NCBI GenBank assembly: GCA_023213395.1
Contig: CM041465.1
Coordinates: 75,275,741 to 75,339,740, forward strand
Length of the DNA stretch: 64,000 bases
Origin: Cycas panzhihuaensis
Lineage: Eukaryota; Plantae; Cycadophyta
Reading direction: 5' to 3'
Shown: piece by piece, positions 16,141-53,900 of the stretch
Position numbering within the stretch: the stretch's first letter is position 1
How the letters are laid out: the number at the start of each line of letters is the position of its first letter
The notes under the pieces: model-generated
What the model was told of the DNA's origin: nothing
Database searches by the model: none
What the model saw: the letters and a program-made list of their open reading frames with translations, nothing else
Position numbers and translations under genes: made by a program

Positions 16141-17975
16141 TGATCAATTGATCCATGTCAAATCTACAACGATTTGCACATAAAAATGTGTTGATGTCCA
16201 TTAAGCATGCCATCATATTTTAGCAACTAAATCTTAACCACGTACTAGATCACAAATACTAGATTAACCATGTTGCTATTAATGTTTGCAATCTATTGTT
16301 TATTTTTTATTATTAATCTTAAGGGAGAAGAGTTTCGAAGAAGGTCAAATCATGAATTAAAAGTCTTAATCTATTCTTTCAACTTATCAAATGCATCTTC
16401 ATATAAATCAATTTCTTTCCACTCATCTTCTAGGAGGGGACAATAAACTACAATTTCTAAAAGTCTCACCTTCTCTCTTTATTCATGAGCTTATTCTCTA
16501 CATGATTCATTAACTAATAAGAGTCATCACCCATATTCTTATAGTCCATGATCCTAGTGATTTGCCCTTGCTACCCTTAATTCTTCAGATATCATATTAG
16601 CATTATCATTCCAACTTTCTAGCCATCCTTCCCAATCAACCTTTGAATTAAGTTGTAATCATCTTTATCACCATGACCAGTTTAATATTTCTTAATTTCT
16701 CACTTATAGCACTGATTTTGTTCAATAGTTAAATCAAATGTTGGATGTTTTAACTTACTTAAGCACAATCATGGAATTGCTTAATAATTAGTAACTTTCA
16801 ACCAAGCATTTGTTGAATACTAATGTTTACATTGGCTCATAACGTAAAGTTATGAACCTCTCTGCTATCATTGTATTTTAAGCATTTTTTATTTAAATAT
16901 GAGAATGGTGAGCCATTAGGGGTTACTTAATATTCCTCATGTCTTATCATTTAGAAGTAAATATTTATTTTAAGATTGTATTTATGTATTATTTATGCAT
17001 TAGATTGTGTATTATAATAGGAAAGGGAGTTTAATGAACAAGAGATGAGTTTAATTTCTTAAATATATCAATGTATGAACTTAATTTTAATAGTTTTTAC
17101 ATGGTACCAGAGCTAGTTAGGTGCAAATTATAGGTTTGGGTATAAGATTGCATAGGTCTAGGACCTATCTTGTGCAATTTACTACTTTTTGGAAGCAAAA
17201 TCAGGTTTTTTTTTTCATACATTTTATGATTTTTGATGTAGTGGTTAAGTCTTGTTTAGGCTTGAGTTATTCAAGTTTTAAATTGATTTATGTCTTTATT
17301 AGAGCTCAAACTCTAATTTTTGAGACTATGAATGATTTATAATTCTTGTTTTTTAATTATTATATTAGAAATCCATGTTGTGGGAATTATGCATAATAGT
17401 TTGCAACATGTTTTTTGTTTAGTTTCTACATTGATGGTCATTGTCATGATGTATAGGAACTACCCTTAAGGTATATTTTTAGACACAAATATCTAAGCAC
17501 TATCAAGCAAACAAAATAGTAAATATGTCAAAGGGTAAGCACTACAAAACAAGTCAAAGAAACTTATTTTAATTTGAAGGAAAAAATCTTCAATGGGTTG
17601 AAAATATCTATTTTCTTTCATCAATAGCTTCTAATTGAAGGAATATAATGTTTGCAAGACTATGCTCTGATACCAAATGATGGAAAATATAATAGCAGGA
17701 GAACATGATAGAACATATATCAAATAACCATAAACCAATATTGCATCAATGTATCACAATCACAATAGCATAAACACATGAAAGCCTTGTTGTTCAATCC
17801 ATTGTAGTAGAAATGAGCATTACAAATCTCCTCAAAGGTAGGCGGTGTCTAAAAACACTAGGGTTGTACACCCCATAATATAAATAGTTTTGGGGGAGGA
17901 GGGAAACTCCTCAACCCCTGAATTCAAATTAATAATAAAATAATATTCACTTAACTCAAATGAAACTAACACAAC

Positions 17976-18820
17976 TTACCTTGATATGTTGAGCATCACA
18001 TGTCTAAATTGAGGTGCACAAGCCTGGTAGGTAAGAGGGAGTGGAGTGATGACATTACACTCCAACATTCTCCCCCTTAATATCAGCACGAACACTTGTA
18101 TCTTTTCCTTGAACTTATGGGCGGTACTTGAAAAAACTTTAAAATTCTGATCTTGATCTTTATCAACTCTTCTCACCCTTATAGTCACATATGTCTCTTT
18201 ATCATAGAATGATGTAGAAAAACTATAAGTAGATGAAACTTGATGCAAATGTAGATGAATAACTATAATTTTGACTTTGTCAACTAAAACATTAAGAAGA
18301 CTTTGAACTTGAACTTTTGTAATCTTTATGGTTTGAATAATTGTCATATTATCAGGTTCATTCTTTGTCATATCATCACATTCATTCTTCGTTATGTCAT
18401 AAGATTCATCTTCATTCTTCCCCTCAAATGGAGGATCAAATCCTTGTGCAACAAGGCAGTCCTGCATTTGATCTAAATCATCATGGTTGTTGTCGTCATG
18501 ATCTATCTGTTCTGTTACCTGTCTCACATGCTCATCAAAAGTTTCATCAAATACATTGGGGGTATCTCCCCCATAAAGGAAATCAATAAATCCCAAATAG
18601 ACTTAGATGTTGTTAATTCAGAAACCAGTGAAAAAACATCATCAGTCATAGTGCAAAATAATAAACCTAAAACTTCATTATCTTTTCTATAATTTTCTTT
18701 AATGCTAAGGTCACATTCATGTTGTAAATACTTTAAAAGATCATATTCAATAAAGTAAGTTTGCATGGTGTCATACCATAGTGAAAAGTTATGGCCATCA
18801 AAATTGGGGAATTGTGCCAT
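17976..18820 (-). pseudogene. gag: C1 copia-type gag (DUF4219/Retrotran_gag_2-like) fused to a pol tail, frameshifted
   Basis: ORFs 18524-18820 (MAQFPNFDGHNFSLWYDTMQTYF...TTSKSIWDLL) and 17976-18596, which ends ...HKFKEKIQVFVLILRGRMLE across the PPT. Confidence 0.85.
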
Positions 18821-20351
18821 TTTGAAAGCAATGTAATCAATAAGAATATAATGATGCGTTTGGAAGCAAACTTAAAAAATCTTTTTCACTTATGCAAAAC
18901 TGAAATAAACTTTTGTGAATGAAATATAAAGATTTTTCAAAAATACCAATTTCTTAAATGAGTAAATATAAATCTTCAATGTAAGAAAAAAACTTTCCCT
19001 TTTTGTATAAAAATAACTTTTCTTTGAGAAGAATATATATTACCTTATGAACAATTTCTGGTTTGAAATAGCTTAAAATGCTTGTAGAAAGATCAAATAG
19101 AAACCTTGAGTTAAACAATGAGATATAAACTAGAATTTTCTTAAAAATTTTAAAAAAAGATAAGCTTATTAGGATGTACTTGTATGCTCAATTTTAACAG
19201 CTTGAAAACTATATTGAATAATGTCAGAATAACTTAAAATTCTACCAATATGTAGATTAATAAGGTGTGAATCTAATGAAACTAACAGTTTTGAAAACGG
19301 GTACCAATAAATCATGATTTGAATGATACAAAGGTATAGACCTCCTTATGGGGCCTAACAGGAGCAGGGTAGTCAAAAATTGCATAAAATTACTAATTAA
19401 CTTTTAGAAAATGTTGAAAAAAAGATCAAATATTGTTTATGAAATGTTCAACGTTCTTTCAATTGAAATTTTTGAAAATATATATTAAAAAAATGTGGAA
19501 AAATAGCAGATTTGAAGCAATAAGGTACCTCAACTTTGAATGATTTGAAAGATAGAAAAAATATATCAAAATATATTAAAAAAATATGCCAAAATGAAGA
19601 GAAATGAGTTAGCTTCCCAACGAAGCTGATGGAATTAAAATCTGATATAAAATAAAAAAATTATAGCGAAAATGGTAATAGGTGTCTTTATGTAAAATGT
19701 TAAGAAACATGCTAAAAACAACTAAATTCCTGATTTTTGCGATTAAAATACTAATGAAAATGAATTCAAAAAATTGAAGTAAGAAGTGGGTATAGAAGTC
19801 TGTAGAACATAGATCGCTATAGAGGAAATTCGGGTAGAAAGTAATTTACCAGTAATAAATTACAGCCAGTTCTAAAAATGATTTTGTTAAAAGTGTGAAA
19901 AATGCTAAAATTTTGAATGTCTGACGTTGAATTGGTCGAAATAGAGTCAAATCGACACCAAATTGGTTACATGACCAGTCAAAATTGGTGTACAAAAAAT
20001 TTCAGATCTATTGGAGGTAGTTTCCTCTGAAACCGATAAGCCAGTGATAAGTTATGGCAACAAAAATGCCAATAACTCTATGAAAAATAAAAAATTAAAA
20101 AAAATAAAAATGAAAAACATTTAAAACCTTTTTGTAAGTGGCTAGCAGTCACATGATGGTGAAATGGAACCGGGGGCTGAAAGTGAAAAGGGATTAAACC
20201 CTTTAAACCCTCAAATTTGAAAAAATATATAATTAAATTTATTTTTTTAAAACTTTATCTTAAATGTTAAAACTATGAAAAATAATGAAATGAAAATGCC
20301 ACCTCGCCGAATTTGCTCGAAATTCTGAGGTAGAGTCGGACTCAATCAATC

Positions 20352-20355
<4 letters not shown>

Positions 20356-20404
<49 letters not shown>

Positions 20405-20418
20405 GTTGTGTCAGGATC

Positions 20419-20461
<43 letters not shown>
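20356..20461. repeat. Two (TA)n tracts inside C1
   Basis: (TA)n at 20356-20400 and 20424-20461. Confidence 0.95.
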
Positions 20462-20465
<4 letters not shown>

Positions 20466-21174: not shown

Positions 21175-21405
21175 ATGGTTGGAGATGGAGAGTTAGAAAC
21201 AGCCCAAAATTTTATTCAAGACCTACAAATTGAAATGGCTTCTCTCAAAGAGAGAATTCAGGTGCTGGAGCTTGAGAATGCAAAACTCTCTACGAGTTTC
21301 AGCAAAAAACCACAAGATGTATGGAAAAGGATACAGCCACCCAAGTACTGCAGCATGGAGGGTTTGTACCACCTAGTGCATGGCAATCTTGTGAAACTAT
21401 GCTAA
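21175..21405 (+). pseudogene. Captured host-like coiled-coil ORF in the C1 cargo (tentatively the N-terminus of plant tRNA pseudouridine 38/39 synthase)
   Basis: ORF MVGDGELETAQNFIQDLQIEMASLKERIQVLELENAKLS is gene-like in composition and absent from C2 and C3. The match to the RVKELE.ENAKL motif is from memory only. Confidence 0.35.
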
Positions 21406-21617
21406 TGGAAAAGAAAATGGAAGCAGATATACTTGGGCCAAGTCAATGCAATCCTAGTTTTCCTTCAACATTTTATGCAGAGGATAATGATCATGTAATA
21501 ACTCAAGGCAGCTCTTTTGGAGGCACTCCAAAGCCAGGTTCACCAAGCAAATACAAGATGTCTGCTGGTAACAAAACTATAAATGTAACAAGCAACATGT
21601 AAGCAAGTGAAGCAAGG

Positions 21618-21686
21618 CAGAGTATTATCAAGAGCCTAAGCAATCTTCTCCAAATAATGCATACAAATTATATGCCACTTGTTTTG
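21618..21686 (+). pseudogene. Captured myosin XI C-terminal (DIL-region)-like fragment
   Basis: Translates to QSIIKSLSNLLQIMHTNYMPLVL, resembling plant myosin XI WQSI(I/V)KSL(N/S)..L..(L/M)K.N.VP(P/L)(F/V)L. Confidence 0.6.
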
Positions 21687-23449
21687 CAAGAGTTTCTAGA
21701 AGTGCTTTTGTGGTAATGTAATGATATATTTAATGAGAACCAGACGGTTATCCCAAGAAGATACCCTTGAATTTACAATTATTACAACAATGTTATGGCT
21801 TGGAAACATAAAATTTTCTGTGATGTTATTTGTGTTCAATCTATCCTTCAAATAATAATAGTAAAAGATACTTAGTGGAGCAATATACTCATATAATCGA
21901 GTCACAATATTAATAAATTTTTCAAATATTTTGAAGGGAATATATCATAAAAAACACTTATATATTTGTATTTGAAAAAATTTCAAAGGAATATATTGAG
22001 CAGATATATAAAATGTATGTAAATTTGAAAATGGAACAGAAGAACCTGGAATACGCAGCTGTAGTTGTCTTGATCTTGTGTATATCTTCTTCAAAAAACT
22101 GAATATGCCTCAAATATTGTAGATATGCAACTGCTATCTTTTGTAGATTGAAATATAGCTTGTAGCTGGAAAAACGCTTTTATGAATCTGCACAAATCTT
22201 GTGAAATAACACTGAATATGCTCGTTATATCATAAAAAACCCCAATAATAAGTGAATCTTTTAAAAAATATAATAAATCTGTTGAAAAACTTTTAGAAAA
22301 TATCACCAAATGATGGAAAATCACAGATCTGAAGTAAGACCCAATAGATCTGCAAAACTATTATGTAAATGTTGTAGATCTGGCCTTAGTATAGCAGATC
22401 TATAGCCAAAAATATCACAGATATGAATAAATATAACAGAAAATATTAAAATTTTGTTGAAATAAGCAGATTTATAGTAAAAAATAGCATATCTGAAGTA
22501 ACAAATTACGAATCTTTGAAGAAAACTCGATAACTTTTGTATGCAACTGATGCTCTTTTGCAAATATGCGAAAAATATCAAATAAGTAGACAAAAACTTG
22601 TAAACTGTCAAAATATATGATAAATATGTAGATCTGAAGAAAGAATAACTTAAATATGAGAATAAAACTTGAATGTATATAACTTGCTGCTAAAAATCCT
22701 ACGTAGATCTGCACAAATCTGAAATAGATCTGAGTAATATTTGTTGAACTAGAAATACAGCTCAATAATAATCAAAATCTACTGAAATAATATATAAAAC
22801 TTGCTAAAAATTTTCAGAAAATAAATATAGTTAATATATCTTGCTTGTAAAAAAAACTGTTGTAGAATACCAGTAGATCCTATTGCTCTTCTTCAAAACT
22901 TGACGGGCCGTGATCAGCTCGATACCAAATGAAAGAATATACTGTTTGCAGGACTATGCTCTGATACCAAATAATGGAAAATATAATAGCAGGAGAACAT
23001 GACAGAACATATATCAAATAACCATAAACCAATATTGCATCAATGTATTAATGTATCACAATCACAATAGTATAAACACATAAAAGCCTTGTTATTCAAT
23101 CCATTGTAGTAGAAATGAGCATTACAAATCTCCTCAAAGGTAGGCGGTGTCTAAAAACACCAGGGTTGTACACTCCACAATATAAATAGTTTTGGGGGAG
23201 GAGGGAAACTCCTCAACCCCTAAATTCAAATTAATAATAAAATAATATTCACTTAACTCAAATGAAACTAACTCAACTTACCTTGACATGTTGAGCATCA
23301 CGTCTAAATTGAGGTGCACAAGCCTGGTAGGTAAGAGGGAGTGAAGTGATGATATTACACTCCAACACTAATGATTTATAAATCACATTAAAAGTTAGCA
23401 TATAAGATATTGAATGATATACAAATTATGGATAAAGATCCCACTAATT

Positions 23450-30063: not shown

Positions 30064-30702
30064 ATGCTTGAGAAGAAAGATATAAAGGCATTCATTATGA
30101 TTTGTGCTGCATTCAATGAGGTTGATTTTCCTTCTGAATACCATTTTGTTATTTCTATGATTCTATATGCAAGTACTGCTAAAGAAGCTTGGGATTTTTT
30201 AAGGGAAGTATTGGAACAAACTCTTGAAGAGACACAACGAATAATTGAAAAAGTAATTAAGGTCAGTTATGGTTATGGTATAGGTATAATGAATGAAGAA
30301 AATATCATCAACACTAATGAAATGATATGTCAAGATGAAGAATGTATAAGTACTAATGAAATTTCTACTAAATATAAAGAAACGATGGTTGAATGTATTG
30401 ATGAAACTACAACTATTGATGAAGACATTAAAAGTGATGAATCAATAAAGGTTTATTTAGATGACACTATTATTTCAAGAGAAATTGAATGTGAATCTGA
30501 TGATCCCATAAAAGATGAGTCTTGTATTGATTCAAGTATAAATGATGCTCCTACTTTGAGCATTGATTCAATTTCAAAGAGTATGCAAGTTGATCAAGAT
30601 TTTGCTTCAAAGGTTGAAGAAATCACTGTTGTACATGGTGATCAAGAACTTATACAAGATAATGATAACAAGCAAGTTGTATTTGAAGATGGTTACTTAT
30701 AG
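30064..30702 (+). pseudogene. gag: Element E gag-like ORF with an acidic tail
   Basis: 212-aa ORF containing KKDIKAFIMICAAFNE...ASTAKEAWDFL, a copia gag UBN2-like motif. Confidence 0.8.
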
Positions 30703-30792
30703 GATCTTCATCACAATCAGACTAGACCAACTGCAATGAAGAATCAGGATTTGCACTTGCTATAGCTACTACATCAACACCATCATCATAGG

Positions 30793-31003
30793 ATTGAAGA
30801 TAAAAATCAAGCTGAGAATATCATCTTACAAAGGCATGAGTATAGAATTGAAAACAAAAATCAAGTTGAAGACACCATTCTACAGCAAAGACATCACTAT
30901 TAAATTGAAGACGAAAATCAAGATTAAGACATCATTCTATATCAAAGACATCACTACAAGATTGAAGACAAAGATCGAGATGAAGACATCATTCTCAAGA
31001 CAT
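30793..31003 (+). repeat. About four degenerate 54-57-bp tandem units in frame with E gag
   Basis: ATTGAAGA(C/T)AAAAATCAAG.TGAAGACATCATTCT units start at 30793, 30847, 30904 and 30961. Confidence 0.8.
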
Positions 31004-32389: not shown

Positions 32390-32497
32390 CTGACCTTAAC
32401 AAGGAGTGTCATATAGGCTTTTACATTTTATGGTTACTCTCATATTTAGCAATTATTAAACTAGGATTTCTATTTCTATCTTTTTTTTCATGGATAT
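32390..32497 (-). pseudogene. Gypsy H RT N-terminal remnant, left of the G insertion
   Basis: Minus strand YP*KKKIEIEILV**LLNMRV...KSLYDTP resembles YP..QKDEIE.LV.EML..GVI..SKSPF.SP and continues the reading from 58545. Confidence 0.65.
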
Positions 32498-34790: not shown

Positions 34791-34889
34791 AGGCTCATCA
34801 TAGCCTACCATTGATGGTGTAATAAATTTAGGATAGGCATATGAGAAGAGCTCATCATAAAGAGTCTTGTCACCTCTTTGCATCCTCAG
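34791..34889 (-). pseudogene. eIF3L: Captured fragment of eukaryotic translation initiation factor 3 subunit L
   Basis: The minus strand translates to LRMQRGDKTLYDELFSYAYPKFITPSMVGYDEP, matching the conserved eIF3L motif MLRMQ(K/R)GD..(V/I)Y(E/D)ELFSY(S/A)CPKF(L/I)(S/T)P. It is not in the supplied ORF track. Confidence 0.85.
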
Positions 34890-34972
34890 CTAATAAGTGC
34901 ATGCTTAGGTTTTTATAAAATACAAACAAAATACACATACTAATATGCCAACAGTTTTTCACAAGTCCTTTA

Positions 34973-35212
34973 TTATGCAAGGTTATTAGCACATGTTGTC
35001 CCATTTCCAGCCACATCATTAGTTGCATTAGCAACTTGCTTTACAAGACTTGCACCCACATTCTTTATTGTGTCTTTGAACTCAATATTTATTGCAATAG
35101 TGACACCATCTTTTGTGACCTTTGGAGAACCAAAGCTTTGTTCGATAACTACATTGTGATCCTTAGGTCCCATCATCACCTTCATTGCATCTGCAAGTTG
35201 TTCCACACCTTC
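34973..35212 (-). pseudogene. HSP60: Captured fragment of mitochondrial chaperonin 60
   Basis: [74 protein letters not shown] is plant mitochondrial CPN60 ([72 protein letters not shown]). No introns within it. Confidence 0.95.
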
Positions 35213-37329
35213 AACAGTATTAGATCACAATAGGTAGCAAACACTGGATCTGAAATTTTGGCAGCAACCATAGAGCAACACTCGTGCTAGTGATGCAACG
35301 TAAGTAGCTGCCCGCCTTTCACTGAAACATGTAGAGCGTTGAAGCTCTTTTCTGACTTACCCTTCTGACATATTCAAGAATCAGACAGACATAACTCTAA
35401 CATGTGCCATTCTCCCCCAGTGCCAGGGCCATTTCATTTTCTATTTCCTCTGTTTAAGCTCCCACCATGTGCCTTCCGTTCACAACTGTTTACATCATAT
35501 ATAATCATTTTTTTTAATCCTTTTTCATGGAAGATCTATTGCCCCCTCTCCTAGCATGGTGACTCGACTGATTTTCACCGTTTTCTTCGAGATTTCACGC
35601 ACTGCGTGGCTACCGATCCATTTTCTATTTTGTTTTTCATTTTTATCCAATGCTCTTTTAAATATATATGCATATATATTTCTCAAATTTGATAATAAAC
35701 CCCTTCTAAGTGTAAATCTACCTCCTATCAGTGGTTTAGATCAGTTGTTCTAATATGTTTCTGATATGTTTTAGCATTGTTCATCGTGCAAGCCGTACAT
35801 AGGCAACAGTATTCTATTTTTCCTAGGTTTTATTTTTTTATAAAGTTTAAAAATATTTAAACATATTTCATAACATTTGAAATCCACGTTTAAAAGAACC
35901 CTATCCCTCTAAACTCTTAGCCCCCAGTCTCATTTTACCTCTATATGACCTTAACTTATCACAAAAGGAGTTAACAAACTTTTCATAAACTTTTTTCATT
36001 TTATTTTTTTTAATTTTTCATTTTTACATAGGGTTATTGGCCTTTTTTTGCCATAACTCTTCACTGAGTCACTAGTTTCTGACGAAACCAGTTTCATTGG
36101 GCCATAAATGTTTCGTATATCAATTTTGATTGATCATATAACCAATTTGGTGCTGATTTGACCCTATTTCAGTCGATTTAAAGTCAATTAGTCTTTTTTT
36201 TAACATTTTTTAAACTTTTTACAAAATCACTTTTTGAACTGATTATATTTTATTACTAGGTGACTATTTTCTACTCGGATTTATTCTAAAGTGATCTACG
36301 TTCAACAAACTTCATTACCCATATTTTATTTTATTTTTTAGAATTCATTTTGACTACTATTTTAATCATCGAAAGTGGCATTTTAGTAGTTTTCAACACT
36401 TTTTAAACTATTTTTTACATAAAGGTACTAGTTACTATTTCTGCTATAACTTTTCTGTTTGACATCCAAATTCAGTTTCGTCAGTTTCATTGGGAAGTTA
36501 ACTCAATTTTCTTCGATCTGATATAGTTTTTTATACATTTTAACGTATTTTTACTTATTTTCAAATCACTCAAAGTAGAGGTACTTTATTGCTTTAAACT
36601 TGTCATATTTACGTTCTTTTATATATAATCTTTCAAATTGTTTCAATTGAAAGTATATTTAGCAATCTTATAAATGATATTTGATTATCTTATATCATTT
36701 TACAAGTATTTTATTGGCATTTTTATACAATTTTGAGCCCCATACTCATGTTGTACCTCAAAACGAGGCCTTTATATTTAGTCATTCAAAATTTGACTTC
36801 TAAGAATTTGTTTTCAAAACGGTCAATTCCATTGGATTCATATTTTATTTATCTTCATGTTGGTGGAGTTTCAACTTATTCTAACATCGTTTAGTATACT
36901 TTTGAAGCAACCAAACTTGAGTTTGTCCTATAAACCTTCTTTTAAAAGGTTTCTTTATATTCCTTATCTTTCAAAGTAAAATATACGTATATTTCAGTTT
37001 TTTTCAGCATTATATATTATCATCAAAGCTAAGGATTTATTACATTGATAATTTATATTTATTCATTTGAAGAAAATCAAAAGGTTAAGGATTATTCCTT
37101 TTATCATCAAAGTTATATTTCAGATTTGTATTATTAAAAAGATTTTTATTACATGCAAATTTACTTATATATCCATCATTTCCTTATTGTGCCTAGTTGA
37201 TTGACTTTCTAAAGGGCATTATATCTACTTCAAAAGGTTTATTTGAAATCATATATATTCATTGTATTTATTGACTTTATTTGATTTAGTAAAAGCATAC
37301 ATTTGATGTACTAAAGTTTCTTTGATAAA

Positions 37330-37935: not shown

Positions 37936-38637
37936 TGTTAGATTGTATAATATAAACTTATGTAATTTTATGTGTCACATGTCTAAATTAAAAATTAAGT
38001 TATTATAATGTTTTTATCTTAGATGTATTTAATTAAACTTGTGGAAGGTCGTTGAATATATGAAACTGCATTTCAACGAACCTCCTTGGTACTTAACCTC
38101 CTAAATTCACGGAGCAGTCGGTAGGAATCTAGGAGGGTCACATCTAATGATGCCTGAAGGCTGGTCTACTTCTTAGAGGTATTTTCTATGCATGTTTTAA
38201 ATTCTATATTTTAATTAATAAAATTATATAGCTTAGGAGGTGGTTTTTTATTCCCCGGAAGGGGTTTTTCCACCTGTCAACCTGTGTGTATATGTAGTGT
38301 CATTTATATTGTTTATATCTGTAATTTCTTAATTGTGTTCTTATTACTGTTTTATTGTGATCCTGTTAATGACACTGTCATATGCCTATTCTCCTACATG
38401 GTATCAGAGCACGTTATGCCCTTTTTTTCTTTGTCTGTTATTTGATTTTTTGCTTTTCTTCTTTTTTTTAAATTATTTTGGTCATCTGAACTATGTATTC
38501 AAAATCGAATGAAACCAAGTTTTTTTTTTTTTTTTTTTGAATACACCATTGAAGCTAAAAACTTTCACTAAATAATATTTTTTCTTAGAGACAAAATTGC
38601 CGTTTATACAAACAGCCTTTTATTTAAACTGTCATTA

Positions 38638-38893
38638 AGATAGACCATTTTACATACCAGTTCATAGAATTTTTACAAGATAGACTGTTTTATATACCAG
38701 TTCATAGAATTTTTACAAGACAGACCGTTTTACATACCAGTTCATAGAATTTTTACAAGACAGATCGTTTTTCATACCAGTCCAGAGAATTCTTACAAGA
38801 CAATTTTTTTATACCAGTTCGTAGAATTATACAAAACCGAAACCCTTGCCATTAAGGCAGAATTATACAAAACTAAAACCCTTACCATTAAGC
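38638..38893 (+). repeat. Tandem arrays in D: about 5 x 40 bp, then 2 x ~33-35 bp
   Basis: AGA(T/C)AGACCGTTTTACATACCAGTTCATAGAATTTTTACA at a 40-bp period from 38638, followed by AGAATTATACAAAAC..AAACCCTT.CCATTAAG twice. Confidence 0.9.
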
Positions 38894-39213
38894 AGAACCG
38901 TACAAAAAAAATTCCATCACTAAAAGCCTTCTTTCTTCATATTCTATTTTCTGTGATAGTAGAGGTGTAGGAAATCCCTGTACAATATAACCATGCAACA
39001 GCCCCATGCATGGCAGCACTACCATATTCAACATTTTCTTTTGGTAAGATTGTCATTCCTGCTAGAACACCAAAAACGGCTGGGAAATTTAACACATACA
39101 ACAAAATAAAACAAAAATAGGGAACAAAAACAAGTAGGGCTGCTAGTTTGCCACAAACCCCAAATATAAAAAAAAAAAAAATCAAAGTTAGGTGGAGAAA
39201 CCCTAGCCGCCAC

Positions 39214-39514
39214 AGACAATGGAGCCTGCACAGAGAGGTCAAGCCGCCAAAGCTTGAAAAGCCAGACAATGGAGCCTACATAGAGAGATCAAGCTGCCAA
39301 AGCTTGAAAAGCTAGACAATGGAGCCTGCACAGAGAGGTCAAGCCGCCAAAGCTTGAAAGCCTGAACCTTTGGAAGCACGCATAGAGGTCAAGATGCCAA
39401 AGCCTGCAAAACGAAGTGAAGCCGCGCCATCTCATAAAGCGAAGTGAAGCCGTGCCATCTCACAAAGCAAAGTGAAGCCGCACCATCTCACAAAGCAAAG
39501 TGAAGCCGCGCCAT
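39214..39514 (+). repeat. Tandem arrays in D: 3+ x 50 bp and about 4 x 28-29 bp
   Basis: AGACAATGGAGCCTGCACAGAGAGGTCAAGCCGCCAAAGCTTGAAAAGCC starts at 39214, 39264 and 39314. AAGTGAAGCCGCGCCATCTCA(C/T)AAAGC repeats about four times over 39410-39514. Confidence 0.92.
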
Positions 39515-39714
39515 AGTCGTACCTGCACAGCAAGAAGGAACGCCGCCTCGAAATCAATATGGAGAAACAGGTAGGGTTTCTAACATAACCCCCTCCTCCC
39601 GGATTTTAATTTTTTTTTTTTTTTTTTTTTTAGTTTGTTATAAAACAAAAGTTTGTCGGGTCCATCGATCCTCATTTTTTATTTTTTATTTTTTTTCTAA
39701 TATAATATGCCCCC

Positions 39715-41810
39715 CCCCAGAACAAAAATGGTCTAGAAAGAAACCATCTATTCAACACTTACGAATATTCGGTAGTATTGCCTGGGGATATATTCCTCAT
39801 GAAAAACATAAGAAGCTAGATAAAAAAAGTCAAAAATATATCTTCATTAGCTACAGCGAAGAAAGTAAAGCATACAGACTTTTAGATCCAGTCATGCATA
39901 ATATTTCTATTTTGCATGATGTCATATTTGATGAAGAATGATCTACTTAAACATCTACTTAAGTAGAAATCCCTGTTGAAGACTTATTAACCAACACTCA
40001 TTCGGTTGATGATTCTAAAAACCAAGTTGATTCAGACATCATAGATTCTTTATCAACCCAAGTCCAAAATTGAACCTTATTAGAACCAGCTGATATAGAT
40101 TCTTCTCTTCAACCTAGCACATTGAATCATCCAACAACCTCAGATTCAGTTATTTATAAGCAACCAACTTGGGAAACCAAAACGCTTGCTGACGCTAGAT
40201 CTAATGTAGGTAATCCTACTGATACTAGGCACACACGTACGTAAAAACTTCATGTAAATTTTGCTTTAGTAGTAAAAATAATGGAAAACAATGATCCAAA
40301 AATATATAAACAAGCCAGCAACAATCATGTCTGGTAAGATGCTATGCAAACCGAATTTGCTGCTCTAATTAAAAATTTTACCTGGGATCTTGTTCCTCTT
40401 CCACCCAGAAAAAATGTAGTTGACTGTAAATGGATTTATAGAACTAAATATAATTCAACAGGCGCAGTAGAAAAATATAAAGCTCGTCTTGTTGCCAAAG
40501 GAGTTTCCCAAATAGATGGCATTGACTATAATGAAACTTTTACACATGTTGCAAAAATGAACACAATCAAGACCATAATTGCTCTTGGAGCCAAATTTGG
40601 TTGGGAAATTCACCAAATGGATGTCAAGAGTGCCTTCTTGAATGGTGATCTCAAAGAAGAGATCTACATGTCACAACCACCTAGATTCATTGAAAATCCT
40701 AATTTAGTCTGTAAATTAAAAAAATCTATTTATAGTTTAAAACAAGCTCCTCGAGCTTGGTATACTAAAGTTGATGATTACTTAATACACATTGGATATA
40801 CTAGATGTATTAGTGATCCAAATCTCTATTTTAAACGTGAAGATGAAAATCTAAACATTCTAATTATTTATGTTGATGACATTATTATCACTGGATCATC
40901 AACACACAATATTTATCATCTCAAATCAACCTTAATGAACAAATTTGAAATGATAGATTTAGGACTATTACATTATTTTCTAGGTTTACAAATTTATCAA
41001 AATCAATCAAATATATCACTATCTCAACCCAAGTACATTCTTGATTTACTCCAAAGGTTTCACATGGATAATGTTGAACCTGTAACCAATCCTTTACAAT
41101 CAGGAGTTAAACTAACTACTGATTATTCAACTCCTTTATGTGATCCAACTCTTTATAGACAACTTATTCGTAATCTAATTTATCTTACATACACTCGCCC
41201 TGACATTTCTTATGCAGTTGCGTTATGTTCTAGATACATGCAACAACCATATGAATCTCATTGGAAAGCAGCTAAATGAATCTTACGCTATCTAAAAAAT
41301 ACCTTGTTTCATGGTTTAATTTATAACTTTTGTAATAAACCATTAACATTAACTGGCTATACTGACTATGATTGGGCAGGTGATTCAAATGATCGTAAAT
41401 CTACTTCTGGTTATGTTTTTTTTTATTGACTCCTCACCTATTACTTGGTTAAGTAAAAAAATGCAGGCACTGGCATTATCAACTACTGAAGCTGAATATC
41501 GAGCATTAGTCGAAGCTGGTAAAGAAGCACTTTAGCTAAAATCGTTACTCAATGAAATTGGTCTAACTATAAACTCTTCAATTGAAATTAAAGTTGATAA
41601 TCAAGGTGCAATTGCTATTGCTTCTAATCCTGTTTCACATTCTAGAACTAAACATATTGAATTACATCAACATTTTATACGTAATTTAGTTTCTGATAAT
41701 ATTATTTATTTGTCTTATTGTCCAACAGATTTCTGATTGTAATATACTTACAAAGTCACTAATCAAGTGAAGTATTTACATCTCGTAGATTTATTAGAGA
41801 TAAGAGAAGT
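39715..41810 (+). pseudogene. pol: Element D pol remnant: integrase C-terminus, reverse transcriptase (RVT_2), RNase H
   Basis: KWSRKKPSIQHLRIFG...KLDKKSQK...SKAYRL. ORF 40344-41279 has KYKARLVAKG, QMDVKSAFLNGDL and YVDD. Then DYDWAGDSNDRKSTSG and RTKHIE. Confidence 0.95.
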
Positions 41811-43129
41811 CTTCATCAAAGGGGGATCATCATGATGAAGATCTTCTTTTCTCTCCTGTACAAAAGTTTACATTAAAGGGGGATGTTAGATTATATAATA
41901 TAAACTTATGTAATTTTATGTGTCACATGTCTAAATTAAAAATTAAGTTATTATAATGTTTTTATCTTAGATGTATTTAATTAAACTTGTGGAAGGTCGT
42001 TGAATATGTGAAACTGTATTTCAACGAACCTCCTTCGTACTTAACCTCCTAAATTCACGGAGCAGTCGAGAATCTAGGAGGGTCATCTAATGATGCCTAA
42101 AGGCTGGTCTATTTCTTAGAGGTATTTTCTATGCATGTTTTAAATTCTATATTTTAATTAATAAAATTATATAGCTTAGGAGGTGGTTTTTTATTCCCTA
42201 GAAGTGGTTTTTCCACCTATCAATCTGTGTGTATGTGCAGTGTCGTTTATATTATTTATATATATAATTTCTTAACTGTGTTCTTGTTACTGTTTTATTG
42301 TGATCCTGTTAATGACACTATCATATGTCTATTCTCCTACATTGATGAAGATCAGATTTTTAAAGTTTTTTTCAAGTACAAATTCCATAAGTTTAAAGAA
42401 AATATTCAAGTGTTCGTGATGACATTAAGGGGGAGAATGTTGGAGTTAATCGCCATCACTCCACTCCCACCTTTCCAACTAGGATTGTACACCTCATCAA
42501 CTTCAATTTAGACATGTGATGCTCAACATGTCAAGGTAAGTTAAGGTAAGTTTAACTTTGATTCAAGTTAGTTTCATTTGAGTTAAGTTAACATTATTTT
42601 ATTATTATTTTGAATTCAGGAGTTGAGGAGTTTCCCTCCTCCCCTAAATTATAAATATTAAGGGGTGTGTAACCCTCATGTCTTAAGACACCACCCTCAT
42701 TTGAGAAATTTGTATTGCTCACTTTCAACAATGGATTGAAGATTCAAGCTCTCATATTTATGCTACTATTGTGCAACATTATATTAAAGATTTATATTAG
42801 AATATTGATATTTTGATCTATCGATTATATGATATATGTTTTGCCCCGTTCTCCTACAATATATTTTTCCTATAACATGTGTCATTACATAAGAATATAT
42901 TGACACATCTTTATAAGGTACCACTTTACAGTATTACAATATAATATGCATAAACCATGGGGTAAAAAATAACCCTATAAGAAACCAAAAAAAAAATTGG
43001 TATAACACCTATACCCATGTGACACTTACAAAGTGTTCAACATATCCTACAATCTCCCATTTGTTAAACATTTTATAAGAAACTTGTATACGCAATTACT
43101 TAATGCCAAAATTATAAACACTAATTCCC

Positions 43130-46100
43130 TTTCCACACCATATAAATTTTTTTGTGCTAATAATCTTGGTCAATGAGTCTGCAATATTCTCCTATATAGA
43201 AAACTTTTGCAAGTCCACCTTATGATCTTGAATTATTTCTCTCACAAAATGGAACTGTACATTAGTATGCTTTGATTGAGTATGAAAAGTAGGATTCTTC
43301 ACTAGGTAGATTGTACTTTGACTATCACAATATATCTTAAGAACATCCCACTTAAAGCCAACATCTATGCATAATCTCTACAACCAAATTGCTTCGTTAC
43401 ATGCATGAGCACCTTCCATATACTCTGCTTCTATGCTACAAAGTACCATAATTTATTGTCTTTTACTCATCTAGCTAATTGCGCTACCACAAAGGGTGAA
43501 AATATACGTACTTATAGATCTTTTGTTGTTAAGATCTCTAACCTAATCAGCATCAATAAATCCTCTCAAGTTCACTATTCTACTCTCCATGGCACCTCCT
43601 TGGTAGTAAATTCTATAGTTTGATATACCCCACAGATACCTGAAAATCCTTTTCATAGCCACCCAATGCTGCCTACCTGGGTTTGACATACACTTGCTAA
43701 CTACTCCCACTGCATGGGTAATATATAGTCGAGTATAAACCATCACATACATCAGGCTACCAACAACACTAGTATAAGGGATAAATGCCATGTCTTTAAT
43801 TTCTTGGTGAGTCTTGGGGCATTATTTAGCTAATAATTTTAAACCAATAGAAAGAGGAAGAGGATAATTAACTAATTTACTATCCCGTAACTTGAATTAT
43901 TGCAGTGTAGTATCAATGTACCATATTTGGCTAAACTAAATATTCTTATTTCTTTTTATCCCTTTTAATCCCAATATCCAAAATAAAATGTTTAGTACCA
44001 AGGCTATTCATCTCAGAATGAGATGCCAATTGGATTTTTACAAGTCAATTCATTTCATTATTATTACCAACTAAAAGTATATTATCAACATATAAAGCTA
44101 GAATAACAAAGTGATCACCAACCTATTTATAATAGATACAATGATCTAGTTTGTTATGCACAAAGCCATCTTCTAATATATGTGAATCAAACTTTTGATG
44201 CAACATCTCTAATGACTGTGTTAAGCCATATAATGACTTATTCAACCTGCACACAATATTCTCCTTCCCTATAACTTCAAAACCTTTAGGCTGTAATATA
44301 TAAATTCGTTCATTAAAGTCACCGTGAAGAAATGCAGTTTTTACATCAATTTGATTCACCTTAAGGTCATAAGTAGTTGCTATAGCCAACAAAAATTTAA
44401 TTGAATCTACCTTCATAATAGGAGAAAATACCTCACCAAAATCTATTCCCCTAATCTAGGAATAGCCCTTTGCTACCAAGCAGACCTTATACTTTTCCAC
44501 AATACCATCTACCTAGAACTTCTTCTTGAAGATCCATTTGTTATCAATAGGTTTTTTACCATCTGATAGATCCACCAAATCCCATATGTTATTTTTGTCT
44601 AAGGCCATCATTTCTTCTTCCATGGCCTTCATCTAGAATTGGCTCTCTTTTGATTTTAAAGCTTCTCGAATAATACCTAGGTCATCATCTGTAGCAAATA
44701 AAACAAAAGAGGAGCAATGAAAGTCTTTAGGAATATATCTGTCAGGTTATCTTCTCTTATGAGTTGATCTCCTCAAGATGTGGGGTTCTTAAGATTGAGC
44801 CACCTCTACAATTGGTCCTTCCTCTTTAGTTAACTCATATTCTAATTTAGAATCTTCATCCCTTACCTCAAATTATACCTTCTTAGAGTCTTCTTCCTTT
44901 GGTTCTTTATCCTACTTTAGATACTTAAACTCCTCTCTAAAGATAACAACATAGCTATACATAGCTTTTTGTATTTCAGAGTTATAAAGCTTGTACCCTT
45001 TAATACCATCATTATAACCAATGAAAATAATCTTTTGTGCTTTGAAATCAAGCTTAGTCTAAGAACGTACACAAAAGCTTCACAACCAAAAACTCTAAGA
45101 TGACCAAGAGATGGATTCTTATCAAACCATACTTCTTTAGGTATTTTGTATACTAAGGTAATTGTCAATGATCTATTTATCAGGTAGCTTGTAATCATCA
45201 CAACCTTAACCCAGAATTTCTTCTCTAAACCAATAACATTGAGCATACTCCTCAATCTCTCTAGAAAGGTCATATTCTCCTTTCAGTAACTCTGTTATGT
45301 TGTGGTATATAGGGAGTTATCTTCTATCTTGTTATCCCACACTACTTATAGAACTACTTAAACTCATTTGAGCAAAACTCACCTTTATTATTAGTCCTTA
45401 GTACCTTGATTTACATGTCACTCTGATTCTCAACCAAGGCCTTAAATTCTTTAAATTTACTAAAGACCTCAAATTGAGAAAGTACAACCATATCTTTCTC
45501 AAGAAATCATCTATGAATGTGACAAAGTATTTGGACCCACCTAATTAGGGTATATCAACAAGTCCAAAAACATTATTGTATACCAATTGTAGAATACTCT
45601 TTGCTCTCTTTGAGCTTGAAGGAAAATTGACTCGATTCTATTTACTATACATACAATGCTCACAAAAATCAAAATCAAATAAGCCATTAATTCTATAGAT
45701 GTCTTATGCCATACCTTTAGAGAATAAATCATAGAGGCCTTTCTCTCCAATATGGCCCAATCTTTGATGCCACAACATAGTTTTACTAGTAAATGATACT
45801 TGAGTCTCAACTACATTATTGCTACTTTTTATAATAGATATGCTACAATTGTCAGCATCCATCGTGTTTATATCAAACTTGTATAGTGTTCCAAATCAGA
45901 CCCCTCTTACTAATACTAATGCTCCTTAAACTATTCTGTAACTATCTTTATTGAAAATCACTTCTATTCCTACATCACCTAATTGACTAGTAGATAATAG
46001 ACTCATAATTAAACTAGGAATATGACTCATATCAGGGATAGTTTTAACCCTTCCATCCCCAAACCAAACCTTCACCTTTCTACAACCTATAATTTTATAT

Positions 46101-47061
46101 AGGTAATAATCACCAAGAAATACTTCATCTCCATTAATACTTTTGTATTCACAAAACCATTTCCTATGGGGAGTAATATGAAGTGAAGTCCTAAAGTTAA
46201 TTAACCAAGACTCAACATTTAGCAACTTACCTGAGGTTGCCAAATAAGCATTGCCATTGGCTCCATCGAAGGCTTTTGCTACCATGGAAGAAATAGCTTT
46301 AGGTAACTTTCCCTTGTCAACCTTAACTTAACATTGGCTCTTCATATAACCAGCCTTTCCACATCTCTAGCATACCAAGGGGTCTTTGCCTGGAGATTTA
46401 GATTTTCCTCTAGATTTTGATCATCTATTCTTAGGCCTTTTTTGTTCATAATCTAATATTTGACCTCTCACCATTAATCCTTCTTTAGAATGATCCTTAG
46501 AAGATTTTTAACTTATCTCTTCTAATAGCAGGGTGACAACAACATCATCAAATTTTAGGGTGGCAGCAGTCGTGTTACTAATCATCATCATAAGATTGTC
46601 TTAGGAATTAAGAAGTGAATATAATAAGGTAATACACTTGTCTTATTTAGACTTTAGTATCCCAATTAAAATAAGCTATCTCATTACGGTGTTAAATATA
46701 ATGAGATGGTCTACAAATGCATCTCTATCACTCACCTTGAGTGAATATAACTTTTTTTGAAGAAATAATTTATTAACTAGAGGCTTAGTCTAATATAGAG
46801 CCCCTAACGTTTTCCATAGATCTTTGGCCATAGACTCTATGGCAATATTAAATAACATCATATCTAAAAGGTATAACCTTATCGAACTAATTTCTTTCTG
46901 ATTAAGCTTCTTTTAGTTTTCATCATCCATATTCACAAGCTTTGTATCTATGATAATGATCCATCGATCCTTTTGACAAGGATATCTTCCATCTTTAGCT
47001 TCCACAACTTAAAGTTCTAGCCATTGAACTTTTCAATCTCCATCTTCATAATGCTTGCCAT
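43130..47061 (-). pseudogene. pol: Decayed gag-pol of element B
   Basis: ATG at 47061 gives MASIMKMEIEKFNG*NFKLWKLKMEDIL. Protease ORF 45926-46285, integrase ORF 44917-45273, RT ORFs 44123-44416 (DVKTAFLHGD) and 43543-43791 (PYTSVVGSLMY). Confidence 0.92.
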
Positions 47062-47735
47062 GATTTTTGCACTCAAGTTCTTCCACTCACTAAATAGCTT
47101 CCCACAAAACTAAAATCCTTAGCTCTAATACTAAATAAAGAGAAAATATAACTGCAAAAGTAATGTATTAGCATAACTCTAAACCATATAAAGAATAAAT
47201 AACATAAACAAATAGAGCACATAACAAATAACACTAAGAGATTTAGGTATAAGTATAGACCCTTTATTAATTTAAGCAATAGTTAAAGAATTACATAGAT
47301 CAAAACCCTAACTCTTCTCATCAACTCATCAAAGGCTCATCCAACCCCTTATATATGTTGTTATATAAGAATATTGATGGAAAAATATGGAGCCACAATG
47401 CTTTGATACCAAAATGAAGGAAAATATGCTTGTAAACTATGAGCCAAACTAAGCTCTGTACCAGTATTGCATCAAATACATCAGTGTATCACCATTACAA
47501 TAGCATAAAACCATGAGAGCCTTGATGTTCAATCCATTGTAGTAGAATGAGTATTCCAAATCTTCCTCAAAAGTAGGTGGTGTCTAAAGACACCGTGGTT
47601 GTACACCCTTAACATTTATAGTTTGGGGAGGAGGGAAACTCCTCAACCCCAATTCAAATTAATAATAAAATAATACTAACTTAACTCAAATGAAACTAAC
47701 TCAACTTACCTTAACTTACCTTGACATGTTGAGCA

Positions 47736-48505
47736 TCACATGTCTAAATTGAGGTGCACAATCCTGGTAGGTAAGAGGGAGTTGAGTGATGACATTACAC
47801 CCAACATTCTCCCCCTTAATGTCAGCACGAACACTTGTATCTTTTCCTTGAACTTGTGGAACTGGTACTTGAATAAAACTTTAAAATTCCAATCTTGATC
47901 TTTGTCGATGCTTCTCACCCTTATAGTCACATATATCTCTTTATTATAGAATGATGTAGGAAGACTATAGGTAGATGAAACTTGATGAAAAAGTAGATGA
48001 GTAGCTGTAATTTGGACTTGAACTTTTATACTCTTTATGCTTTGAACGGTTGTCATATCACCAGGTTCATTCTTCGTTTTGTCATAAGATTCGTCTTCAT
48101 GATGCTCCCCCTCAAATGGAGGATCAAATCCTTATGCAACAAGGTGGTCCTGCATTTGATCTGAATCTTCATTGGTATTGCCGTCATGATCTACCTGTTC
48201 TGTCACCTGTCTCACATGCTCATCAAAAGTTTCATCAAATACAGTGGGATATCTCCCCATAAATGGAAATCAATAAATCCCAAATGACTTAGATGTTGTT
48301 AATTCGTAAACTAGTGAAAAGACATCATCACCATAGTGCAAAATAATAAACCTAACACTTCATTATCTTTTCTAGAATTTTCTTTAAGGCTAAGGTCATA
48401 TTCATGTTGTAAATACTTCAAAAGATTACGTTCAATAAAGTAAATGTGCATAGTATCATACCATAGTGAATAGTTATAGCCATTGAAAATGGGGAATTGT
48501 GCCAT
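47736..48505 (-). pseudogene. gag: C3 gag plus pol tail, frameshifted
   Basis: ORFs 48311-48505 (MAQFPIFNGYNYSLWYDTM...) and 47736-48056 (...FHKFKEKIQVFVLTLRGRML). Confidence 0.85.
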
Positions 48506-50970: not shown

Positions 50971-53900
50971 GTATAGAGAAGCAACTAGATGGTAATAATC
51001 CAAAAAATGCAAAACTGTCTGAACAATTACAGGAAAGTAATGTAGTAGTTAGAAAGTTGCAAGAGCATTCTGCAGAGCTGCAGAGGCGTTTGATTGATTT
51101 TAAATAAGGAGTTAATCAATTTTCAGAGCAACATAGCCCCAAATCAATGCAGCTGGGGGATTAGTTGGTAGAGCAGTGGGCTATGTCCAGAGTGCTTGTA
51201 GACAACTGGAAAATGTCTTGAGTGCTCGTTGTACGGTTACAATATTTGTTCAATGAGTGTAGATTGAAAAAATGTATTGAAAGAATGAGGTGAACCAGGC
51301 ATGAGAGCTTGGAAAGGAGAGGCTGCAAGGCTTTGGATTCCTTTTTTTTTGTATACTTTGAAGTTAATAAGGAACAAAGAGGTTTTGATTTAAGCTTCTT
51401 GCATAAGGTGACGTAGAGTAGTCTGATTTTGGATGTTTGTCCTTTTAAAATTATGGCTCAACAATTGGGCCTAAACTTAAAACACACATATAACAAAGAG
51501 AATAATGAGGTTCTTGATGTGAGTATGGTTCTGCTACCAAATTACTTATCAGATTTCGATCGAGGTATGGATCTACACAATGTGAGTATCACTTGAGTGA
51601 AAAGGAATATTTTAACAAATGTTAAGAACGATTGCTCTTAAAAAAGATGTAGTTATGGAATGAAATCAAACGAATGGCAAGCTAAAGTAGGACTCTACTA
51701 GGTTTGGAGGATATAACCCAAGCTAGAAGTTGGAAATACTAATGAGTAACGGTAAAAAAATTATACTTCAACCAGATTTGTATAGGCCTTTCAACGTAAA
51801 TACTTCAAATAAACCAGATCCTTCTTTCCCCCTTTTAATATATTGACAAAAATTATATAAAAAAATATCTATAAATTTGTATTTGAAACAAACTTTCAAA
51901 TATGTTGCAGGTATATGAAGAAGGGATACAAAGATTTTACAGGAATCTTTTCAAATAATAATAGTAAAACAGCTTAATGGAGCAATATACTCATATAACA
52001 GAGCTTTTTCAAATGTATCTTGTAGTAGATATATTAGAAATATATATGCAAATCTGAAAAATGTAATCGAAAAACCTGGTAGTGTAGCTGATTTGCAGAC
52101 TTGTAGCAGGTTAACCCTTACATATAAGATCTTCAAACGTTCAAGTGTATTCTTCAACAAATAGATCTGCTGCATATACTTCTTCGAATGGTTGAAAATG
52201 CCTCAAAAGTTGCTGATATGCAATTGCTATCTTTTGTAGATTGAAATATAGCTTGTAGCTTAGAAAAAGCTTTTATGAATCTGCACAAATCTTGTGAAAT
52301 AACACTGAATATACTTGTTATACCATAAGAAATAACCAAATAATGAGTGAATCTATTGAAAAATATAATAAATTTGTTGAAAACTTGTAGAAAATATGAA
52401 AATATCGATCAAGTGAGACCCAGAGATCCGAAAATATTATGTAAATGTTGTAGATCCGCCTTAGTATAGCGGATCTATAGCAAAAATATCACGATATGAA
52501 CAAATATAACAGAAAATATTGAAAACTTGTTGAAATAAGCAGATTTATAGTAAAAAATAGCAGATATAAAGTAATAAATTGTAGATCTCTGAAAAAACTT
52601 GATAACTTTTATATGCAACTGATGCTCTTTTGCAAATCTGCAAAAAATATCAAATAAGTAGATAAAAAAACTTGTAAACTGTCAAAATATATGGTCAATC
52701 TGTAAATCTGAAGAGAAAATAACTTGAATATGAGAATAAAACTTGAATGTATATAGCTTGCTGCTGAAAAATCCTTTGTAGATCTGCACAAATCTGAAAA
52801 TATATCTCAGTAATATTTGTAGAACCAGAAATATAGCTCAATAATAATCAAAATCTGCTGAAATGATATATAAAACTTGCTAAAAATTTTTAGAAAACAA
52901 ATCTAGTTAATATATATTGCTTGTAAAAAAATCTGTTGTAAAGTGCCAGTAGATCTTAGTGCTCTTCTTCAAAGCTTCAGCAGGTCAGCAATCGCCTGCT
53001 CTGATACCAAATGATGGAAAAAATATGGAGCCACAATGCTTTGATACCAAAATGAAGGAAAATATGCTTGTAAACTATGAGCCAAACTAAGCTCTGCATC
53101 AAGATTGCATCAAATACATCGATTGTATCACCATTACAATAGCATAAAACTATGAGAGCCTTGATGTTCAATCCATTGTAGTAGAATGAGTATTCCAAAT
53201 CTTCCTCAAAGTAGGTGGTGCCTAAACACACCTTGGTTGTACACCCCTTAACATTTATAGTTTGGGGGAGGAGGGAAACTCCTCAACCCCTGAATTCAAA
53301 TTAATAATAAAATAATACTAACTTAACTCAAATGAAACTAACTCAACTTACCTTAACTTACCTTGACATGTTGAGCATCACATGTCTAAATTGAGGTGCA
53401 CAATCCTGGTAGGTAAGAGGGAGTTGAGTGATGACATTACACCCAACAAATATATAGATACTTTACAAAATACCATCTTATGGTTTTATAATACAATTGA
53501 CATAAAATATAGGTTGAAAAATACCCCCCTAAGACACCCCAAAATAAATATCAAGGGCTTCCACACCTGAACCCCTACTTGGAGGGCCACTAGTCCCTTA
53601 GACCCCCCAATTGGAGGCCTTACAATAGGCCCTCAAACCACATAAAGGGGCTCAAGTGTAACACCTATAGCCATGTAACATTTATAAAGTGTTCATCATA
53701 TCCAACACATCAAGTTTCTTACATGGTATCAGAGTAGCCCTGAAGGGAGCAATCTTTGGAGGCTTCAGTACATAGTACTTCAAGATTGTTTAAAAAAACT
53801 TTATAGATCAAAGGATACTAAAGGGACCATATAGTGGAGGCTTCAAGAAGTTGTTTTTGTAATGTATATATAGTCGTATGACCTAGTACAAAACTATATA

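Follow-up and report, generated by a model that had tools for sequence, protein, structure and literature searches.

We examined a 64,000-nt stretch of the genome of the cycad Cycas panzhihuaensis (contig CM041465.1, positions 75,275,741 to 75,339,740), which we call the window; all coordinates below count from its first base. The window has a GC content of about 30% and is made up almost wholly of nested long terminal repeat (LTR) elements. Three of these form the family that we describe here, family C, with copies C1 (17636..23367, minus strand), C2 (32944..42874, plus strand) and C3 (47375..53448, minus strand). They are non-autonomous copia-type LTR elements with a slot between two conserved scaffolds. 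The content of the slot is different in each copy, and in C1 and C2 it includes pieces of host genes that lie on the strand opposite the element. BLAST with C1, C2 and C3 found no further copies of the family in the window, and Rfam and ARAGORN found no RNA genes there.

Each copy is a separate insertion, as had been claimed in a first-pass annotation that a model made from the letters of this DNA alone. Perfect 5-bp target site duplications (TSDs) bound C1 (CTAAT), C2 (ACATG) and C3 (AATAT). All three elements begin with TGTTGG and have direct LTRs with TG...CA-type ends, the 3' end of C2 having mutated to ...TATA. The LTR pairs are 438 bp long and 94.1% identical in C1 (3' LTR 17636-18067, 5' LTR 22930-23367), 435 bp and 93.6% in C2 (about 32944-33380 and 42438-42874), and 437 bp and 96.3% in C3 (3' LTR 47375-47806, 5' LTR 53012-53448), and LTRs taken from different copies are about 85% alike. 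Two nucleotides past the 5' LTR each copy has a primer binding site (PBS) of the TGGTATCAGAGC type, matching initiator tRNA-Met; in C1 it reads TGGTATCGAGC (22916..22927, minus strand). The polypurine tract (PPT) AAGGGGGAGAA abuts the 3' LTR in all three (18068..18078 on the minus strand in C1). The shared layout that had been proposed, LTR-PBS-scaffold I-slot-scaffold II-gag remnant-PPT-LTR, is thus present in every copy.

The family had also been described as gag-only, with no reverse transcriptase (RT) or integrase (INT). For C1 and C3 the second part holds, as we found no RT, INT or RNase H (RH) in either. C2 does contain all three, but they sit in a copia fragment (37936..42341, plus strand) that is nested in the C2 gag tail and does not belong to family C; it has its own TSD (TTGAT), 464-bp LTRs that are 94.2% identical, an INT piece, RT and RH. 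As for gag, what is left is a remnant. In C1 (17976..18820, minus strand) it consists of two overlapping open reading frames (ORFs) split by a frameshift, in C2 (37330..37935, plus strand) it is cut off by the nested copia, and in C3 (47812..48505, minus strand) it is broken into short ORFs. The remnant matches positions 1-72 of the 172 in Pfam Retrotran_gag_2 at 25.6 bits and E 9.5e-6, a weak match that falls under the 27-bit cut-off. Its likeness to copia gag is limited to about 70 N-terminal amino acids, after which an acidic tail runs into the LTR. Codon-position differences give a weak sign of past constraint on gag, for C1 against C2 only and in the N-terminal part only. The C1 gag ORF has no relatives in a set of 5.8 billion proteins.

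Because of the TSDs, the LTR ends, the PBS, the PPT and the weak N-terminal match to copia gag, we place the family as a non-autonomous derivative of Ty1/copia. Its members are 5.7-6.1 kb long without the nested insert of C2, and their internal regions of 4.9-5.2 kb are long and code for no replication proteins, which is what defines a LARD. We rejected a strict TR-GAG assignment (under 4 kb, with a single intact and complete GAG ORF), since these elements are longer and their gag is N-terminal only and frameshifted or fragmented. LARD is therefore the class that fits family C better.

Outside the slot, the copies are recognizably related. Pairwise BLAST of scaffolds I and II gives about 83% identity between C1 and C3 and about 70-80% against C2, with slots between them that can't be aligned. 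In C1, scaffold I runs from the PBS to the slot (21847..22915, minus strand; about 83% against C3 and about 70% against C2), and scaffold II (18821..20262, minus strand) is conserved with both other copies. Scaffold I also contains tandem repeats of 20-22 bp. The slots themselves lie at 20263..21846 in C1 (1584 bp), at about 34560..35842 in C2, and at 49687..51949 in C3 (2263 bp, with no host gene identified); none of them aligns with another slot or with any other part of the window. These coordinates are close to those given by the first-pass annotation, and its statement that the slots differ completely between copies was borne out.

The edges of the slot agree well. On the left, C1 and C3 break at the same base, after ...TATTATTATTTGAA|, and the C2 edge lies within about 90 bp of that position; divergence blurs it, leaving it uncertain within 34471-34560. 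On the right, the edges of all three copies fall within about 10 bp of one another, and similarity resumes at ...AAAGTTT(T)AAAA. We looked around the slots of all three copies for inverted repeats of at least 12 nt, for flanking TSDs and for 5'-TC...CTRR-3' Helitron ends and found none, and the slot ends share no sequence among the copies.

Read on the sense strand, the whole leader, meaning the scaffolds together with the slot, is rich in T and poor in A, and purines make up 39-46% of it (C1 18821-22929, C2 33379-37329, C3 48506-53011). This is the reverse of the A-rich RNA that is usual in retroelements. As a speculation, such a leader would fit a build-up from antisense copies of purine-rich host RNAs.

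The best-identified cargo is in C2, where fragments of HSP60 and eIF3L had been reported antisense to the element, and both proved correct. The first is a piece of mitochondrial HSP60/CPN60 (34976..35215, minus strand, antisense to C2) that covers residues 46-125 of the plant precursor. It retains an open frame of 83 amino acids and matches Pfam at E 9e-11 and PDB at E 5e-26. The second lies about 85 nt downstream on the same strand and is a piece of eIF3L (34791..34889, minus strand, antisense to C2), 33 codons covering residues 399-431 of 564, with E 7e-6 for Pfam Paf67 and E 9e-7 in PDB. By eye, we had suspected that the HSP60 transit peptide and 5' untranslated region (UTR) were also there. 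We dropped this idea because tblastn with plant N-terminal HSP60 sequences gives residues 46-125 only.

The HSP60 piece is spliced. A protein search with it returned more than 100 short ORFs that had been called on eukaryotic genomic contigs, and we used the points where homology starts and stops in these to place introns. In about 70 of the ORFs the homology to HSP60 begins at residue 62-63 of the plant reference while the ORF extends further upstream, and in about 65 it stops at residue 117 (...AGDG) while the ORF runs on. The shared start and end mark out residues 63-117 as a conserved exon with an intron on either side. The C2 piece runs in one ungapped frame from 46 to 125, straight across the intron positions at 62/63 and 117/118, and so takes in parts of three exons. 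Because it is unbroken across two conserved intron positions, we conclude that this piece was copied from spliced mRNA, provided that the donor gene shares these widely conserved positions. The same search brought up a 120-aa "hypothetical protein" on a chromosome of Cryptomeria japonica that crosses the conserved AGDG intron position and has odd substitutions; this may be a further HSP60 fragment made by retro-copying, here in another gymnosperm.

In C1 the cargo is a different gene. A phmmer search of the full library with a 108-aa frame from the slot found the 217-aa Ginkgo protein Gb_19669 at E 3e-15, and a tblastn search with Gb_19669 against C1 recovered codons 1-141 from the start codon onward at E 8e-31. 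The piece lies at 21175..21599 on the plus strand, antisense to C1, and has one frameshift near 21304. It spans two ORFs that had been listed separately as "coiled-coil" and "unidentified"; there is indeed a host gene in antisense here, but the two ORFs are one fragment of a Gb_19669 homolog. The best outside match of any of the cargo is this Ginkgo protein. About 100 nt ahead of the ATG there is a TATA-like CCAATATATAAAAA, and the homology stops exactly at GTAAGC (21599-21604). What follows, 21603-21852, had been read as myosin XI-like. It has no Pfam match, no PDB match even at E 10 and no usable Atlas match, and the identification is thus unsupported; the stretch includes QSIIKSLSNLLQIM..., which we take to bear some likeness to the myosin XI tail, a likeness that none of the searches confirmed. 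Lying directly after GTAAGC, this part of the slot may be intronic.

The C3 slot had been said to hold coding-like DNA, and here we disagree. Pfam, PDB and a protein search with its 133-aa ORF all gave nothing, Rfam gave nothing either with E allowed up to 0.1, and a period-3 signal is absent from the slot. By comparison, the period-3 signal has a z of 10 in the HSP60 piece, 3.6 in the Gb_19669 piece and 13 in a copia RT, and a periodicity scan of the whole window picks out only proteins of transposable elements (TEs), gag remnants and the HSP60 piece. The long ORFs in C3 are found on both strands. One strand is only 9-16% T, which leaves no stop codons on it or on its complement, and the ORFs are a compositional artefact of T-poor DNA. 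Across the three copies, then, we have host-gene matches in the slots of C1 and C2 and none in C3. The identified pieces are only 100-425 nt long and have decayed, showing stop codons and frameshifts. All three of them (HSP60, eIF3L and the Gb_19669 homolog) are antisense to the element that carries them.

Besides the gene pieces, each slot contains a module of 0.5-1.2 kb that adjoins scaffold II and, on the strand antisense to the element, is rich in purines and poor in T. The modules are at 20470..21090 in C1 (plus strand; CpG observed/expected 1.22), at 35346..35842 in C2 (minus strand; 0.62) and at 49760..50940 in C3 (plus strand; T 9-16%; 1.45), and all three are CpG-rich, against a ratio of 0.30 over the window and of 0.07-0.15 in the LTRs. 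The modules have a GC content of 36-50%, which is above their surroundings, are non-coding, and have a few small internal repeats. We considered that the three might descend from one module and rejected this, as their local alignment scores equal those of shuffled controls. In a genome where methylated CpG decays, the undepleted CpG suggests that the modules arrived recently from unmethylated sequence. In general, the GC and CpG of the cargo exceed those of the decayed scaffolds and LTRs, as expected if the cargo entered the lineage later. Next to the C1 module, in the slot near scaffold II, is a 107-bp palindromic (AT)n microsatellite (20355-20461), a possible fragile site with no counterpart in C2 or C3. 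Elsewhere in the 64 kb, T is similarly scarce in one place only, the leader of the copia nested in C2 (39051-39600); there the T-poor strand is that copia's own sense strand, and the leader contains tandem repeats of 28-100 bp.

We favor the reading, to which we give a probability of roughly 55%, that family C is a copia-derived non-autonomous family with a replaceable leader slot, whose content is swapped during reverse transcription and carried as passive cargo. Such a family must be moved by the proteins of another element. Its leader, from the PBS to gag, is unusually long (about 4-5 kb) and includes one dispensable segment, the slot, whose content has changed completely at least two times since the three sublineages parted. 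New content would have been joined while reverse transcription was under way, by the enzyme jumping to other nucleic acids in the virus-like particle and returning. The edges would be held in place by the need to keep the cis-acting scaffolds, presumably for packaging, dimerisation or other cis functions. In all likelihood the cargo itself has a passive role.

A switch of the usual kind, on the minus strand and from one co-packaged RNA to another, would leave the insert in sense. A spliced HSP60 piece in antisense therefore needs another route, and two could provide it. Plus-strand synthesis might switch onto a host mRNA as its template. Alternatively, host cDNA might be joined in either orientation, with the sense inserts lost later on if their splice or poly(A) signals harm the element RNA.

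We do not need frequent replacement to explain the data. The scaffolds of C1, C2 and C3 have diverged by 17-30%, and these copies represent old sublineages and are not siblings. Two replacements in all that time therefore suffice, and each sublineage may carry its own single fixed cargo. For this reason we do not uphold the description of the slot as hypervariable and reloaded. Other parts of that description survive in reduced form. The multi-gene mosaic is real in C2, but C1 has one identified gene and C3 none. Transcripts were sampled in the case of the spliced HSP60 piece, and this has been established for that one fragment only. The antisense orientation is consistent over all three pieces, but these come from two informative elements, for which an all-antisense outcome has a chance probability of 25-50%, and an orientation bias is not established from two elements.

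Several observations weigh against the swapping of content during reverse transcription. The C1 piece, with the TATA-like box before its ATG and homology that ends at GTAAGC, resembles genomic DNA in its unspliced state, with promoter, exon 1 and intron, and not mRNA. The eIF3L piece is flanked by ...TTATTAG on one side and GTAGTG on the other, both possible splice sites, and this piece and that of C1 can be read as spliced or unspliced. Half of each slot is a non-coding module that a template-switch model does not predict. The exact edge shared by C1 and C3 is trivial if a single replacement separates them, and the case for recurrence rests on C2, the copy with the fuzzy left edge. Finally, the sample consists of three copies, each from a different sublineage.

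A stronger version of our reading would make the process routine. Copia-derived elements in this genome would regularly take up pieces of spliced host mRNA in antisense at one leader site, by a route not yet described for LTR elements (for example, a plus-strand switch), and give rise to a large "Pack-LTR" population with fast turnover that is able to make antisense RNA against housekeeping genes. We regard this generalization as doubtful. Further along the same line, the family could be a dedicated system in which the slot is reloaded at most replication cycles with mosaics of host transcripts, always in antisense, and read from the LTR promoter into antisense RNA or small interfering RNA against housekeeping genes. 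A fixed slot with three different contents, three antisense pieces out of three and one piece of spliced-mRNA origin are what such a system would produce, and the antisense orientation would be a distinct feature, given that transduced genes are usually sense (PMC7264820). We nevertheless consider a dedicated system improbable. With scaffolds this far apart, two or more replacements spread over a long period would be enough; C3 yields no identifiable gene, and what C1 holds is a single gene and no mosaic; the orientation rests on two elements; and the pieces are short and decayed.

We give similarly poor odds to filling at the DNA level, in which a fragile site such as an AT-rich palindrome breaks repeatedly and is patched with stray DNA or cDNA, either in a master copy or after insertion. 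The (AT)n palindrome at the edge of the C1 slot would be a suitable site, the C1 cargo with its TATA-like box, exon 1 and GTAAGC resembles contiguous genomic DNA, and mosaic filler DNA at repaired plant breaks is known and has been named as a capture route (PMC13477047). However, C2 and C3 have no such palindrome, and all three copies are filled with none empty. The edges coincide, where break repair usually chews back to a variable extent, and the spliced HSP60 piece shows that at least this donor was RNA or cDNA.

The modules raise another possibility, that the slot is chiefly a non-coding part of the element that turns over quickly, as described for the hypervariable, tandem-repeat-prone UTRs of Ogre and Retand, and that the few host pieces in it are incidental. 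Hypervariable UTR regions of LTR elements are documented (PMC7004042, PMC11963269), beside scaffold II all three copies have a module that is alike in composition, placement and orientation, and there are small repeats inside the modules and tandem repeats in scaffold I. However, the modules show no trace of common descent and align no better than shuffled controls, between flanks that are 70-84% alike. A CpG ratio above 1 argues for recent entry from unmethylated sequence and not for long residence in a methylated element, and host-gene pieces are present in two of the three slots. We find this explanation quite unlikely. Nested gene-carrying transposons (Pack-MULEs, Helitrons or CACTA elements) that all landed at the same spot are largely refuted: such elements do capture the 5' ends of genes and nesting is common, C2 itself holding a nested copia, but the slots lack terminal inverted repeats of at least 12 nt, flanking duplications and Helitron ends, their ends are unlike one another, and three landings of unrelated elements at one position are improbable.

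The replaceable slot resembles several known systems and differs from each. In maize Bs1 the captured pieces are fused in frame with gag, and the element has very few copies and one cargo. Family C differs from this in that its pieces are antisense, unfused and decayed and that one position has different contents across members. The two are alike in that Bs1 is also a small LTR element without pol that has kept gag and contains intron-less fragments of several (three) host genes, and Bs1 can be copied again as a "pseudo-retrotransposon" (PMC7264820, PMC5131818, PMC13317346). Going through the marks of Bs1-like transduction, we find host sequence between the LTRs in C1 and C2, intron loss for HSP60 only, and an orientation matching that of the element in 0 of 3 pieces.

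LTR-mediated retroposition by double template switching, described by Tan et al. 2016 and also for Ty1 in yeast, likewise places a retrocopy of a spliced mRNA between parts of an LTR element; two-parent chimeras occur, and the product can retrotranspose again (PMC5131818). That switch takes place between co-packaged RNAs during first-strand synthesis and leaves sense retrocopies at scattered points, where they replace coding regions. The cargo of family C, by contrast, is opposite in orientation and fixed in the leader.

A 2026 study of Platycladus and other plants (23 in all) found that Copia and Gypsy elements carry short fragments of host exons, with a preference for first and second exons (PMC13477047), which agrees with a C1 piece that starts at the ATG and an HSP60 piece near the 5' end of the coding sequence. 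Unlike what we see here, no fixed slot is described in that study, and only about 14% of its host TEs have two or more fragments (PMC13477047).

TR-GAG and LARD elements have LTRs, a PBS and a PPT, lack pol and are moved by an autonomous partner, as we suppose for family C (PMC4350172, PMC13477061). TR-GAGs are under 4 kb and have one intact gag ORF, whereas in family C, at 5.7-6.1 kb, a broken gag lies by the 3' LTR behind a leader of 4-5 kb; LARDs, for their part, are not defined by host cargo. Pack-MULEs, Pack-CACTA elements and Helitrons also combine constant ends with variable host fragments inside, often the 5' ends of genes. Those are DNA transposons and capture genomic DNA with its introns, while in family C the carrier is an LTR element, with at least one spliced fragment among its cargo and no transposon termini at the slot.

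The capture of gene fragments by LTR elements has long been known, from Bs1 and from rice, sorghum and maize (PMC13317346, PMC3726574), and template switching and multi-gene chimeras within LTR elements are established (PMC5131818). It is also extensive in gymnosperms, with about 400,000 TE-borne exon fragments per genome, Welwitschia mirabilis included (PMC13477047). The genome of that species has a GC content of 29% and about 10,600 non-autonomous LTR elements (PMC8275611). On orientation, a review states that genes transduced by retrotransposons are usually sense (PMC7264820). The words "antisense" and "orientation" are absent from the text of the Platycladus study (PMC13477047), a 2026 review of plant gene capture has neither the word "antisense" nor a fixed slot, and the papers that we consulted do not describe a fixed slot with antisense spliced cargo. 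What is new here is therefore not LTR gene capture itself but that the position is fixed, that the content has been replaced wholesale from one family member to another, and that spliced cargo lies in antisense.

Capture by LTR elements is usually described as sense, scattered in position and rare within a family. If the pattern in family C turned out to be general, it would imply either an undescribed step of reverse transcription, with host mRNA serving as the plus-strand template, or strong selection on the orientation of the cargo. There would then be thousands of natural antisense constructs against essential genes, with a silencing effect that could be measured, and part of the TE-borne exon fragments reported in gymnosperms could be explained in this way.

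The surroundings of C2 and C3 have a history of their own. When we removed both elements and compared their flanks (31800-32943 joined to 42875-43900, against 46300-47374 joined to 53449-54600), they aligned as a direct repeat of about 325 bp with 79% identity. An older copia, with INT and RT ORFs at 43651-46285 on the minus strand, accounts for the repeat, which represents its two LTRs. C2 and C3 inserted at points about 23 bp apart within this LTR repeat, and this closeness suggests a target preference.

Two other small LTR elements in the window, at 28064-31286 and at about 6180-10636, have a layout like that of family C, with gag last. Each has a gag-like ORF adjoining its 3' LTR (30064-30702 on the plus strand and 7680-7967 on the minus strand, respectively), and their internal ORF pieces, which we inspected by eye only, include nothing gene-like. 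Near the start of the window, at 1161-1572, a 206-bp unit is present in two tandem copies that are 96% identical.

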